Source: Octopus sinensis
Taxonomy: Eukaryota
Length of the DNA stretch: 64,000 nt
Direction: 5' to 3'
NCBI RefSeq assembly: GCF_006345805.1
Contig: NC_043023.1
Location: forward strand, 7,192,001-7,256,000
This document shows, piece after piece, positions 28,068 to 38,639 of the stretch. Below the pieces are notes generated by a model. It ran no database searches, had not been told where the DNA came from, and was given only the letters and a program-made list of their open reading frames with translations. A program made the position numbers and the translations under genes. The stretch's first letter is position 1, and each line of letters starts with the position of its first letter.

Positions 28068-28134
28068 ATCTGGGACACGGCTGGACAAGAGAGATTCCGC
28101 AGTATCACTCGGGGATACTACCGTGACGCTGATG
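28068..28134 (+). CDS. Rab26: Rab26-like G3/switch II exon, variant A: [22 protein letters not shown](A)
   Basis: Acceptor tttacag, donor G|gtaggt; 67 nt, phase 0/1, no stop. Joins in frame to the exon at 46881 (G+CC = Ala). Confidence 0.88.
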
Positions 28135-31100
28135 GTAGGTCTTTCTACTACTACTACTACTACTACTACTACTACTACTAATACTAGTACTACTACTACT
28201 ACCATTACTACCATTACTACTACTATTAGCATTACCATTGTTATTACTATTGCAACTAATCCAATCCTTTCTGCTAAACTCCTCCTCCAATCCTAAACTC
28301 CTCCTCCTATCCTAAACTCCTCCTCCTGCGACGCCTCTTTCTGCTCTGTTAGCGCTACTCCTCCTACCACACTCACTACATCTCCTCCTCCTCCTGCTAC
28401 TACTACTGCCGCCTTTTCTATACCTCTTCCTGCTACCACTATCACCACATCTATACCTCCTCCTACTCCTGCTCCTCCTGCTGCTATTACTGCCACCTTT
28501 TCTATACCTCTTCCTGCTACCACTATCACCACATATATACCTCCTCCTACTCCTGCTCTTCCTGCTACAACTACCGCCACCTCTATACCGTCTCCTCCTC
28601 CCGCTACTACTACTCTTACCACCACTGCCACTTCTACATCTCTTACTGCCACTTACTTACTTGCTACTCCTGCTCTCACTATGCCTTCTCCTGCCACTGC
28701 CACTACCTCTGTACTTCCTCTTACTACTCCCACCACTTTCACTACATCTTCTCCTCTTACTCTCACCTCCTCTGTACCTCCTCCTGCTTTTACCACTTCT
28801 ACTGTTGCTACACCTCTTCCTGCTACCATTACACAGCCTCTTGCTACTACTACTACTACTACTACTTACTACTACTACTACTACTACTACTACTACTACT
28901 ACTACTACTACTATATTTTCTCTTCCTCTTCCTTCTCTTGTTCCTGCACCCTCTCTCTCTCTCTCTCTCTCTCTCTCTCTCTCTGTCTTCTGTCTCTGGA
29001 TTGTCAAAAGATGCACACACACACACACACACTAATAACTGAAACGAGTAAAAGGGTCACCATTCGAGCGTGAGCATTACCAGCGTCACCTTACTGGCAC
29101 TTGTGCCGGTGGCACGTGAAAATACGTTCGAGCGAGATTGTTGTCAGTGCCGCTGGACTGGCTCCTATACAGTTGGCACATAAAAAACACCATTAGGGCG
29201 TGGCCATTGCCAGTACTGCCTGACTGGCTCTCGTGGCACCTTGAGCAAGTCTCTTTTATTGTAGCCTTGGGCTGACCAAAGCCTTGTGAGTGGATTTGGT
29301 AGACAGAAACTGAAAGAAGCCAGTTATGTGTGTGTGTGTGTGTGTGTGTGTGTGTACATATCTATCTATCTATATATATATATAGATTCTATCTCTCTGT
29401 ATAGATATACATACATATACATATACACACACATATATACATATTTGAATGCACACATGTATATATACACAGCAACATGTACATACATATATACATACTT
29501 ATACACACTTAGACATCCACACTTACACATACACAAACATAAACACTTGCAAATGTATGAAGCAACACTGTAGCATTTTTGTTGAAGGTTCTGCACTAAC
29601 TAACCTCATGAACTTGTATCTACACACAGATCCCTTCTTCTCATCTTAACTCCCACTCACATAGAACAGCTATCCCACTAGGTTTCTGACCCTAAACCAG
29701 TATTTTTTATATATTCTTTTCTTTGACTATTATTCTTTCTTTTTCTTTCTATTTTTCACTCTTTCTTTGTTTTAGATGAAGGGCTAACGCTCAAAATATT
29801 AAGACACTTCCTCTTTCCATTGAAGTGTTAAGCTAATACTTTATTTGTCAGACTTTGTTCTTCCTGTGTTGTTTTTTATGTTTATTATATTTTCACTAGT
29901 ACATGCACATAGTTGTACACATACACATATATGAATGCATATAATACACATTACATGTATATAGTTATACCACATATGTACATGTATGTGTGCATATGTA
30001 AAATATATGGGTATATATATATATATATATATATATATATATATATATATATATATATATCATCATCATTTAACATCTGTTTTCATTGCACGCATACACC
30101 CCCATACATATATACACAAATATGTGTGTGTATACATATACATATATATATATATATATTATATATATATATATTATATATATATATATATATATATATA
30201 TATATGTGTGTGTGTGTGTGTGGTGCGTGTGTGTGTGTTTGTGGGTATATATATATGATATGGGTATAAAATAAGGCCACCCATGTGTGTATAGTGCCTC
30301 AAGGATTGCTTGGTAGCAGAAGGCAAGATATATATATATATTATGTGTGTGTGTATATATATATATAGTATATATATATATATATATATATATATATATA
30401 TATAATAATATATATATATATACATATATACATACATATATATATATACATACATATAAATACATTATTTATTATACTATCTACAATATATATATATGAA
30501 TAACATATCTATATATTATATATATATATATATATATATACGTACATACATATATATACATGTATATATATACATACATACATATATATAAATATATATA
30601 TAAATATACATATATATAATAATATACATACATACATACATATATACATCACACATATATATATATATATAAATACATACATATATATATATATATGTCA
30701 GTTTATTGTGTTTGTACAATATGAAACTAGTAGTGGCTCATATTTAAGTACTTACCATCATCATCATCATCGTCGTCATTACCATCATCTTCATCATCAT
30801 TATCACCATCATCATTTATCTTTCGTTTCCCATGCTGGCCCGTGTTGGACGTTTCATCAGGAACTGGCCAGCCAAGGAACTGCACCAGGCCCCAGTATCT
30901 GCTTCGGCTTAGACTCTGCAGTAGGACGCCCTTCCAAACACCAACCACTTTAAAAAGTGTACTGGATGCTTTTTATGTGGCACCAGCACCAGAAATATTA
31001 AGTGTGTGTGTGTGTATATATTTATATGTATATATATATATATATATAAAGGCGGCGAGCTGGCAGAAACGTTAGCACGTCGGGCGAAATGCGTAGCCGT

Positions 31101-31370
31101 ATTTCGTCTGCCGTTACGTCCTGAGTTCAAATTCCGCCGAGGTCGACTTTGCCTTTCATCCTTTCGGGGTCGATTAAATAAGTACCAGTTACCACTGGGT
31201 TCGATGTAATCGACTTAATCCGTTTGTCTGTCCTTGTTTGTCCCCTCTGTGTTTGTCCCCCTGTGTTAGCCCCTTGTGGTAGTAAAGAATTAATATATAT
31301 ATATATATATATATATATATATATATATAATATATATATATATATGTATATATATATATATATACATATG

Positions 31371-31675
31371 AGAGACCCCCTTCAGTCATGAATGACCATG
31401 AGATTGCACATAGAAAGTTACCGTCCATGGTACAAGTCCATGCATACCGGCCTCCCCTCTCCACGCCACTAGTGTTATCCTAGGGAAAGGCAAAAGGGCC
31501 GATACAGCTTGGCACCAGTGATGTTGAAACTCATTTCTACAGCTGAGTGAACTGGAGGAATGTGAAATAAAGTGTCTTGCTCAAGAACACAACACACAGC
31601 CCGGTCCGGGAATCGAACTCACAACCTCACGATTATAAGGTCGACGCTCTAACCATTGAGCCATGTGCCTTCACC
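31371..31675 (-). mobile_element. tRNA-derived SINE family 4 (second copy 45128-45468, +)
   Basis: Head gtgaaggcacatggctcaatggttagagc...gagttcgattccc followed by CORE-like ttcttgagcaagacacttt; both copies end in catgactgaagggggtctc. Confidence 0.8.
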
Positions 31676-36195: not shown

Positions 36196-36435
36196 ATATT
36201 AGAAGAAATAAGGTACTCAGAAATCTGGATGGTTTTATATTTACACATTTTTATTAGTATGTCACATGTTTTTATAAATTATATATTAGCGCTTGCATCT
36301 ACTCTAGTAGACTCTTCAGATTTGAAGAGTCTACTAAAGCGCTAATATATGATTTATAAAAACGTGTGATATACTAATAAATATCTGTAAATATAAAACC
36401 ATCCAGATTTCTGAGTACCTTATTTCTTCTAATAT
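36196..36435. repeat. 240-nt near-perfect palindrome (4-nt loop at 36319-36322) made of two inverted hammerhead-bearing repeat ends
   Basis: Central stem tagtagactcttca-gatt-tgaagagtctacta; outer arms atattagaagaaataaggtactcagaaatctggatgg and its reverse complement. Confidence 0.85.
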
Positions 36436-36904
36436 ATAATACCACCTGTACATCACCTCCAAACCTTCTAATATATATACATATATACATATGCACACAT
36501 ACACATATGTATGTATATATATACATACACATATATATGGTGTGTGTGTATATATATATATGTATTTATAGGTATATGTAAGTACATATATATATGTATG
36601 TATATATGTATGTATGTACATGTATATATTATCTAAGTATATATAATATGTCTATATATGTATGGATATATTTATTTGTGAGTGTGTGTTTCACTCACTC
36701 TCCCTCTCTCTTTCTCTTGCTCTCCCTCTCTACATAATTATAAATACACACATATGTTCATACAAACATATACACGCATACATACATACACACATATATA
36801 CATACATACTTAGATATATATATATGTGTGTGTGTGTGTATATGTCTATATATATCTTTCTGTGTGTGTGTATACATATATATATATACACACACACACA
36901 CATA

Positions 36905-38572
36905 TATATATCACTATTTCTCTCCCCTTCTCTCTCTCAGTCTTTGTCTTTCCTCCTCCTCTCTCTCCCTTCCACCACCTCTGAAACCTTTACCTTCTCA
37001 ACATCACTATCTCCTTCTCTCACTCCCCATCTCTTGCCATCCCTCTTCCTCCTCCTCTCTCAGTCTTTTCTGTCTCTCTTCTTGCCTCTCTCTCTTCCTA
37101 CCATCTCTCAAACCCTTACCTTCTCAACGTCTCTATCTCCTCCTCTCTCTGCCAGTCTCTTTCTCTCTCTTCCCTCCCACCTCCTCCCAAATCTTTACTT
37201 TCTCAAAATTCCATCTCCTCTTACTCCCCATCTCTCTATACTCCTGTTCCTCTCCTTCCTTTGTCTTTCTCTCTCTCTCTCTCTCTCTCTCTCTCTCCAG
37301 CATTCCTCAAATCTTTACCCTCTCAACATCTCTGTAGCGTAGCTTGGATATGATCTCTCTCAAACAGTGAGGATATTGCCTGCAGTGAAAACCCAAAAAG
37401 ACTGTCATGGGACCTTATCTGAAGGTTCTGATTGGTTAGTTTACACAATAGCGTGAAATAAAACTGCACCAAAACCAACCAATCAGAGTAGCGGACACAA
37501 TTGAGCCTAAGCAGCCGAAAGATTGCTGCTATCTAACACGACATTATTTCTATGATCTCTCTCAAACAGTGAGGATACCACCGAGCTACACTACATCTCT
37601 ATCTCCTCCTCTTTCTCTCCTCTCTCCCTCCATCTGACCACCTCTCAAACCTTTATCTTCTCAATATCCCTATCTCCTCACTCTCCCTATCTCTCTCCTC
37701 TTCTCTACCACCTCTCTCCATATTTCTGTTTTTCTCTGTCTCGGTTTTCCCCCTTCTATCTCCAACACCTCTCAAACCCTTATCTTCTCAACATTTCTAT
37801 CTCTTCCTTTTTCTCTCCCCATCTCTCTTCCTTTCTCCCCGCTCTCTCTCTCTCTCCATCTCTCTGTTTTTCTCTGTCTCTATCTGCTACTGTCTCTCTT
37901 TCTCTCCCCCACAACATCTCTTAAACCCTTACCTTTTCAATATCCCTATCTCCTCCTCTCTCTACCAGTCTCTCCTTCCCTTACTTCCCCTACTTCCCCC
38001 TACTTCCTCTCAAACCCTTATCTTCTCAACTTCCCTATTTCCTCCTCTTCCCCTCTCACCTTCTCCCTTCTTCTCTTTCTACCTGTCTCACTTTTCCCCT
38101 CTCTATCTGTTTCTCTCTGCCTCTCTTCTCTCTCTCCCTCCCCCCACCTCTCAAACCTTTACCTTTTCAACCTCTCTATTTCCTCCTCTTTCCCTCACTC
38201 TCTTTCCCTCTCTCTCTCTTCCTCCATCTCTCTCCCCTACCTCTCTTTTCCTCTCTCTCCCACTTTCTTCCTTCACTTTCTCCCTGTCTCACACCTCCCC
38301 TTTCTATCTGTTTGTTCTGTCTCCCTCGCTCCCTCACACCACCTCTATCTCCACCTCTTTCTCTTCCCACCCTCCCTCTCTCTCCCTCACTCCTCCCTCT
38401 CTCTCTCTCTGAGCATACACCTAACATTTCTCACCAGCACGCACACACTCACCCAATCCCTCCCTCCTCACAGTCCCCCTTAACACCCCTCTCTCAATCC
38501 CTCTCCCTCTCTCTCTCACACTTCCTCTCACTCTCTCTGTCTCTCTGTCTCTTTATGTTCTCTCACTTCCAG
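36905..38572 (+). repeat. 1.7-kb CT-rich tract with degenerate internal repeats abutting the exon-B acceptor
   Basis: Recurrent cacctctcaaacccttaccttctcaacatctctatctcc units. Similar tracts at 21060-21560 and 53290-54105 also abut acceptors. Confidence 0.9.
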
Positions 38573-38639
38573 ATCTGGGACACGGCTGGACAAGAAAGAT
38601 TCCGCAGTGTAACCAATGCTTACTACAGAGACGCTCACG
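38573..38639 (+). CDS. Rab26: Rab26-like G3/switch II exon, variant B (canonical-like): [22 protein letters not shown](A)
   Basis: Acceptor cacttccag, donor G|gtatat; 67 nt, phase 0/1. Closest to the Rab26 motif SVTHAYYRDAH. Confidence 0.93.

Follow-up and report, generated by a model that had tools for sequence, protein, structure and literature searches.

A conserved pair of alternative switch-II exons in an octopus Rab26/37 GTPase gene and its lophotrochozoan relatives

Splicing that chooses between tandem, mutually exclusive exons is a known phenomenon, and the nearest precedent for the case described here is Rab6A and Rab6A′, isoforms that differ by three to four residues through a duplicated exon, used one copy at a time, at the PM3/G3 motif (PMC7538953). 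A tandem-exon-duplication substitution event has been reported in RAB37, from human to Drosophila (Martinez-Gomez et al. 2021, PMC8373072), and one report names DENN/MADD as a candidate guanine nucleotide exchange factor (GEF) for both Rab26 and Rab37 (PMC12495445). We analysed a 64,000-nucleotide stretch of the Octopus sinensis genome (GCF_006345805.1, contig NC_043023.1, positions 7,192,001 to 7,256,000 of the forward strand), hereafter the window, which contains most of one Rab26/37-family GTPase gene. Within it, two duplicated exons, A and B, encode alternative versions of switch II, and such a pair in a lophotrochozoan Rab26/37 is the new element of this work. In the literature that we searched, no mutually exclusive pair of switch-II exons was described for Rab26/37. 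An earlier reading of the window from its letters alone (the sequence-only reading) had regarded the pair as undescribed for this subfamily, which stands for the published papers that were searched but not for RefSeq, where the pair is already present in isoform models. Rab26 and Rab37 function in regulated secretion, at synaptic vesicles and in autophagy, and switch II is a general Rab partner interface that nearly every partner contacts.

Both exons lie on the plus strand, span 67 nucleotides (nt), run from phase 0 to phase 1, and encode 22 amino acids (aa) plus one nt, covering the G3 motif and switch II. Exon A, the derived copy, occupies positions 28068–28134 and is bordered by ...tttacAG upstream and GTaggt downstream. 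Exon B, the ancestral-type copy, occupies positions 38573–38639, with ...cttccAG upstream and GTatat downstream. The two copies are identical at 54 of 67 nt and 18 of 22 residues, and they share the AG/GT borders, equal length, and equal phase by which tandemly duplicated, mutually exclusive exons are recognized. The reading frame stays open through the upstream exon (21579–21620), either A or B alone, and the downstream exon, which was placed at 46881–46933 (53 nt, with its GT at 46934–46935), its end falling one base before that given by a hasty reading. Because 67 is not a multiple of three, inclusion of both copies or of neither shifts the frame and introduces an early stop. Frame analysis placed this stop 234 nt 5′ of the last exon junction when A and B were joined and 190 nt 5′ of it when both were skipped. 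The positions and sequences of the two AG/GT-bounded exons given by the sequence-only reading were borne out, and reading the spliced exons agreed with its claim that one exon keeps the frame and both or neither lose it. No third switch-II copy was found in the 64-kb window, and no protein with two switch-II copies was found among those fetched.

The window was compared with genomic loci from Argonauta, Pomacea, Owenia, and Tubulanus, and in all five genomes exon A lies upstream of exon B, with both exons 67 nt long and bounded by AG/GT. Exons A and B start at 40277 and 44599 in the octopod Argonauta hians (L003), at 39026 and 39666 in the gastropod Pomacea canaliculata (L005), at 16471 and 24208 in the annelid Owenia fusiformis (L004), and at 12272 and 15877 in the nemertean Tubulanus polymorphus (L007). 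Recurrence of this two-copy order in four other genomes excludes chance as the source of the arrangement, and since the 67-nt length is invariant, the frame rule is valid in all five. Among annotated proteins, A and B products apparently from the same gene were found in Mytilus, Crassostrea, Haliotis, Aplysia, Babylonia, Pecten, Lingula, Lineus, and Tubulanus, and the chiton gene model was of the A type. The pair is present in molluscs, annelids, nemerteans, and brachiopods, and the duplication is therefore older than their split. It is pan-lophotrochozoan, and present in many automatic annotations, rather than a cephalopod feature. The genome of the louse Pediculus encodes one fused exon with a single SVTHAYYRDAH, and only B-type sequences were found in the sampled proteins of Branchiostoma, Schistocerca, Tribolium, and Tenebrio and in five Argiope isoforms. 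No A/B pair was seen outside Lophotrochozoa in the sampled arthropods and chordates, a thin outgroup sample. B carries the outgroup state, and A is therefore the derived copy; the earlier observation that B resembles canonical Rab26 agrees with this match to SVTHAYYRDAH. A search with a 48-aa peptide around the A-type exon was uninformative on taxonomic range, all its hits being short pieces of unrelated Rabs. In the heterodont bivalves Mercenaria, Ruditapes, Mya, and Dreissena, one switch-II form was observed (P0015, P0027, P0029, P0040, P0246, and P0248), SVTHAYYRDAN, which combines a B-type body with an A-type last residue. In this group, one exon may have been lost or both may have merged.

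Both copies are under purifying selection. The ratio of non-synonymous to synonymous differences per site (pN/pS) was 0.02–0.11 for orthologous A exons, with synonymous sites near saturation (pS from 0.55 to >1), and was similar for orthologous B exons (0–0.08). Between Octopus and Argonauta, exon A showed about 13 synonymous and one to three non-synonymous differences. With these low ratios and the recurrence in four other genomes, the expectation that the duplication would be conserved and exon A intact in related species was confirmed. Across all fetched proteins, the A-type pattern was S-I-T-(R/K)-(A/G)-YYRDA-(N/Q/D/H/T) and the B-type pattern S-(V/I/M)-T-(H/N)-A-YYRD(A/S)-(H/Q/N), and the fourth position alone separated the classes without exception. 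This position was R or K in 35/35 A-type proteins, Arg being common and Lys rare, and among B-type proteins it was H in 105 and N in three, the latter from octopods. Going by homology with Ras and Rab structures, it is presumably part of the switch-II helix, two residues ahead of YYR. The last codon usually differs between A and B as well, and in cephalopods Ala is replaced by Gly. Exon B reads SVTHAYYRDAH outside octopods, and the last residue of octopod exon A, D, is unusual. Exon A of the window is also a mosaic. Its first 36 nt (28068–28103) are identical to exon B of the window (38573–38608) at 35/36 positions and to Argonauta exon B at 33/36, but to Argonauta exon A at only 26/36, whereas its last 30 nt match Argonauta A at 24/30 positions and exon B of the window at 18/30. 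The last 30 nt of exon B match Argonauta B at 26/30 positions. Such a mosaic points to partial gene conversion, from B to A, in the lineage of Octopus.

Full-length open reading frames, uninterrupted and intronless, were found in two Logan contigs, L001 (1740 nt) and L002 (1171 nt); in both, exon 3 runs straight into an A-type exon, which is followed by the ALLLLYDV exon. As the gene extends over more than 45 kb in octopus, these contigs represent spliced transcripts. Their closest named relative was RAB26 of the cuttlefish Acanthosepion (Sepia) pharaonis, which is also A-type. B-type transcripts of the same cuttlefish-like taxon, seen as full-length proteins on contigs of transcript size, outnumbered the A forms among assembled contigs (39 for P0230 and two for P0231, against one for each A form). 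Each exon was found singly between the same flanking exons in transcripts of this relative. The RefSeq models of O. sinensis, isoforms X1–X4, comprise all four combinations of A/B with a second exon pair, P1/P2, described below. X2 (XP_029652213) and X4 (XP_036370242), both recovered from inside 90% protein clusters, contained the exact peptide of exon A in the window, and four exon-A residues are the sole difference between them and X1/X3. The cuttlefish-like transcripts, the RefSeq models, and the purifying selection support the proposal of the sequence-only reading that exon A is used, as one of a mutually exclusive pair in a single Rab26/37 gene. The exon pair is a genuine and ancient feature that functions at the level of RNA.

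The remaining window exons, all on the plus strand, complete the GTPase. P1 (8501–8611; 111 nt, phase 0/0) encodes 37 aa from the G1 P-loop through switch I/RabF1. The constitutive exon 3 (21579–21620; 42 nt, 14 aa) is the donor to exon A or exon B, and the constitutive exon 5 (46881–46933), encoding (A)LLLLYDVTNKTSFDNIR, is the acceptor for either. Exon 6 (48845–48967; AWLTEINEYAQEDVVIMLLGNKADMSGDKIVRREDGERLAR) carries the G4 motif NKAD, exon 7 (52187–52263; DHNVAFMETSAKTGMNVDLAFMAIA(R)) the G5 motif ETSAK, and exon 8 (54106–54208), the last coding exon, ends in ...VKVGGCC-stop with a double-Cys prenylation motif. Both 5′ coding exons and P2 lie 5′ of the window start. Motifs G1–G5 and the RabF motifs were complete in the spliced exons, including YYRDA, LLLYDV, NKAD, and ETSAK, and at the protein level all window exons were 100% identical to the Octopus sinensis "Rab-37-like" isoforms. 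The best PDB sequence match was human Rab26 (2G6B, E = 5e-84; Rab8A, 6e-59), and the top named homologues were Rab-37-like or Rab-26-like; on this basis, the gene appears closest to Rab26/37 among the Rabs. An AlphaFold model was discarded for structural comparison, as its predicted local distance difference test (pLDDT) score in switch II was below 50. An assembly gap of 100 N (62391–62490) lies 3′ of the gene. A dispersed repeat of ~55–110 nt occurs in many copies in the window in both orientations (1124–1551, 2593–2699, 4839–4945, 13783–13889, 41360–41459, 48076–48182, and 52676–52782), and the same repeat forms long tandem arrays in the Argonauta A–B intron (L003, 40.7–42.3 kb and 45.7–46.2 kb).

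The second exon pair encodes the region of the P-loop and of switch I. Its upstream member is P2 (...GIGFT) and its downstream member P1 (...GIDFR); a separate 5′ exon belongs to each, and the P2/P1 tandem was seen in the genomes of Argonauta (L003, 8797–8907 and 27447–27557), Owenia (L004, 2203–2313 and 13965–14075), Tubulanus (L007, 342–452 and 7809–7919), and Pediculus; locus L006 has the two exons at 119–226 and 3016–3126. Both P-loop exon types were also found in vertebrate, spider, butterfly, and centipede proteins. The statement of the sequence-only reading that no other exon is duplicated therefore holds within the window but not for the whole gene, where the P2 partner of P1 lies farther 5′, and in place of the two isoforms that it had proposed, four are modelled. 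A P-loop exon of 111 nt is a multiple of three; double inclusion therefore stays in frame and is often annotated in tandem. We observed 26 database proteins with both P-loop exons in tandem and two GDSGVGKT motifs (including P0004, P0005, P0010, P0043, P0055, and P0060), among them vertebrate Rab37 "isoform X1" models and spider, butterfly, and centipede proteins. These tandem models are probably annotation artefacts. In Argonauta, at least 15 repeats of the terminal part of the last coding exon (VAEYIQRENIVKIGGCC) are spread over ~2 kb (L003, 56524–58690), 3′ of the annotated, partial gene end, an arrangement that could reflect a tandem repeat or an assembly problem.

Splice signals differ between the two switch-II exons. 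Across the five genomes, the 5′ splice site of exon A was GTAGGT or GTATGT, and that of exon B was GTATAT, GTACAG, GTACTA, GTACAT, or GTACTT, without a G at +5. In the window, this gives exon A a good site (GTAGGT) and exon B a weak one (GTATAT). The polypyrimidine tract of exon A was the poorest among the internal exons in both octopods, Octopus and Argonauta. Directly 5′ of exon B lies a CU-rich tract of ~1 kb with 85% pyrimidine (37520–38572, plus strand), also present in Argonauta. This tract was dropped as an exon-B-specific feature, since similar tracts precede several constitutive exons, and consequently only the absence of such a tract at exon A is informative. In octopods, B would be the default exon, as its constitutive-like CU tract implies, and A the regulated one needing activation, as may be read from its weak polypyrimidine tract and strong 5′ splice site.

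Exon A of the window is flanked by complementary microsatellites (27960–28255, plus strand), with (GGT/GTA)n on its 5′ side and (TAC)n on its 3′ side. Once transcribed, these flanks were predicted to form a duplex looping out the exon, with a minimum free energy of −115 kcal/mol (z = −5.86; 0/200 shuffles as good). Argonauta exon A has the (TAC)n side only (z = +0.65), and in this comparison the pairing is specific to Octopus sinensis. There, the predicted duplex might lower exon A use or supply double-stranded RNA. A blastn comparison of Octopus and Argonauta found no unique conserved intronic block near A or B, and the matches were mostly dispersed repeats and microsatellites. An apparently conserved block after the P1 exon proved to be nothing more than a shared (TG)n repeat directly after the P1 5′ splice site (window, 8612–8734; Argonauta L003, 27558–27672). 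Characteristic repeats kept between the two octopods were (TG)n after P1, (TAC)n after A, and (CT)n before B.

The explanation that we consider very probable is that A and B are an ancient tandem pair, one copy of which enters each mRNA and retunes the switch-II surface. The duplication would have preceded the divergence of molluscs, annelids, nemerteans, and brachiopods, with B keeping the ancestral sequence and A diverging from it. Each mRNA would take exactly one of the two exons; mRNAs with both or neither would encode a truncated protein without G4, G5, and the prenylation site, and these out-of-frame products would be removed by nonsense-mediated decay (NMD) or be inert. The choice of A or B, in effect an Arg/His toggle, would shift recognition by GEFs, GTPase-activating proteins (GAPs), GDP dissociation inhibitor (GDI), or effectors, giving different partner preference or kinetics. 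From its position in switch II, such a difference in partner specificity is plausible. Several points weigh against this explanation. The A/B difference is small, with one consistent residue, and in the AlphaFold prediction for the core encoded by the window, pLDDT averaged 68.7 and fell below 50 at residues 62–67, in switch II. Support for use of exon A in Octopus itself comes from RefSeq gene models, and NMD of the double and skipped forms is assumed from the position of the stop codon. The single, hybrid-looking form of heterodont bivalves shows that the pair can apparently be lost. Rab6A and Rab6A′, moreover, are described as largely redundant (PMC7538953). The last two points and the single consistent residue suit an alternative that we hold to be unlikely, though to be taken seriously, in which the isoforms are biochemically equivalent and the pair is kept for expression control, through tissue-specific splicing or through dosage via unproductive mRNAs. 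A single form apparently suffices for heterodont bivalves, and the frame rule does yield unproductive products. Equivalence would nevertheless make it hard to explain why Arg/Lys in A and His in B are each held where synonymous sites are saturated, if the residue were irrelevant, and that residue lies in the switch-II helix, part of the general Rab partner interface.

That Octopus exon A is a pseudo-exon, silent or in decay, that entered RefSeq by homology-based prediction is far less probable. This would be in keeping with evidence for its use in Octopus coming from gene models, with its weak polypyrimidine tract, with flanking repeats predicted to sequester it in Octopus sinensis, and with the unusual octopod last residue D. 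However, Octopus and Argonauta both preserve its frame, its length, and its two splice sites, the differences between the two are mostly synonymous (~13 vs. 1–3), and the orthologous exon is present in cuttlefish-like transcripts. An assembly artefact, in which a haplotype mis-join or the collapse or expansion of a repeat made one exon appear twice, deserves almost no credence. The near-identity of the first 36 nt of A and B (35/36), the microsatellite-rich surroundings, and the N-gap elsewhere in the window could hint at such an error, but the 3′ halves are unlike (18/30) and closer to their respective Argonauta orthologues (24/30 for A, 26/30 for B), the flanking introns of A and B are unrelated, and the same two-copy order is found in four independent assemblies from three phyla.

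A long-held exon pair that changes essentially one basic residue in switch II amounts to a natural experiment on partner choice in Rab26/37. The older P1/P2 pair combined with A/B would give four possible GTPase cores, and in a locus with both pairs both switch regions are diversified by splicing instead of gene duplication. A broader proposal, which we offer tentatively and regard as somewhat less than an even bet, is that lophotrochozoan Rab26/37 combines the bilaterian-wide P1/P2 pair with A/B, so that one locus makes four cores, each with its own GEF, GAP, and effector specificities. If true, this would be a splicing counterpart of the vertebrate split into the Rab26 and Rab37 paralogues, kept since before these phyla diverged. 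For annotators, the X1–X4 isoforms of the mollusc Rab26/37 gene are probably real alternatives, and the tandem P-loop models are suspect as artefacts.

Among known systems, the A/B pair resembles Rab6A/Rab6A′ of human and other vertebrates in that a tandem duplicated exon near G3/switch II contributes one copy to each mRNA. It differs in belonging to another Rab subfamily, in arising from an independent duplication in the lophotrochozoan lineage, and in having as its discriminator an Arg/His toggle inside the switch-II helix. An effector difference between Rab6A and Rab6A′ was reportedly described by Echard et al. in 2000; isoform-specific effector binding is documented for that pair, whereas for A/B a difference in binding is predicted from the position in switch II. 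As in other frame-enforced mutually exclusive exons, the length of A and B is not divisible by three in any of the five genomes; unlike those in which NMD removes the double and skipped forms, NMD is assumed for A/B. The repeats flanking exon A in the window can pair strongly, as in the docking/selector systems of insect Dscam1 or 14-3-3zeta, but this pairing is absent in Argonauta, and in place of conserved, complementary, unique intronic elements, only low-complexity repeats were common to Octopus and Argonauta. The RAB37 event (PMC8373072) belongs to the same Rab26/37 family and is of the same kind. A/B is apparently not the same pair, as vertebrate and arthropod proteins show one switch-II type; judged from sequence, the published event is probably the 111-nt P-loop/switch-I pair P1/P2 rather than switch II, and octopus P1/P2 is its apparent counterpart. 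The locus sets beside P1/P2, 111 nt long and in frame when doubly included, a 67-nt A/B pair whose exclusivity is enforced by the reading frame.

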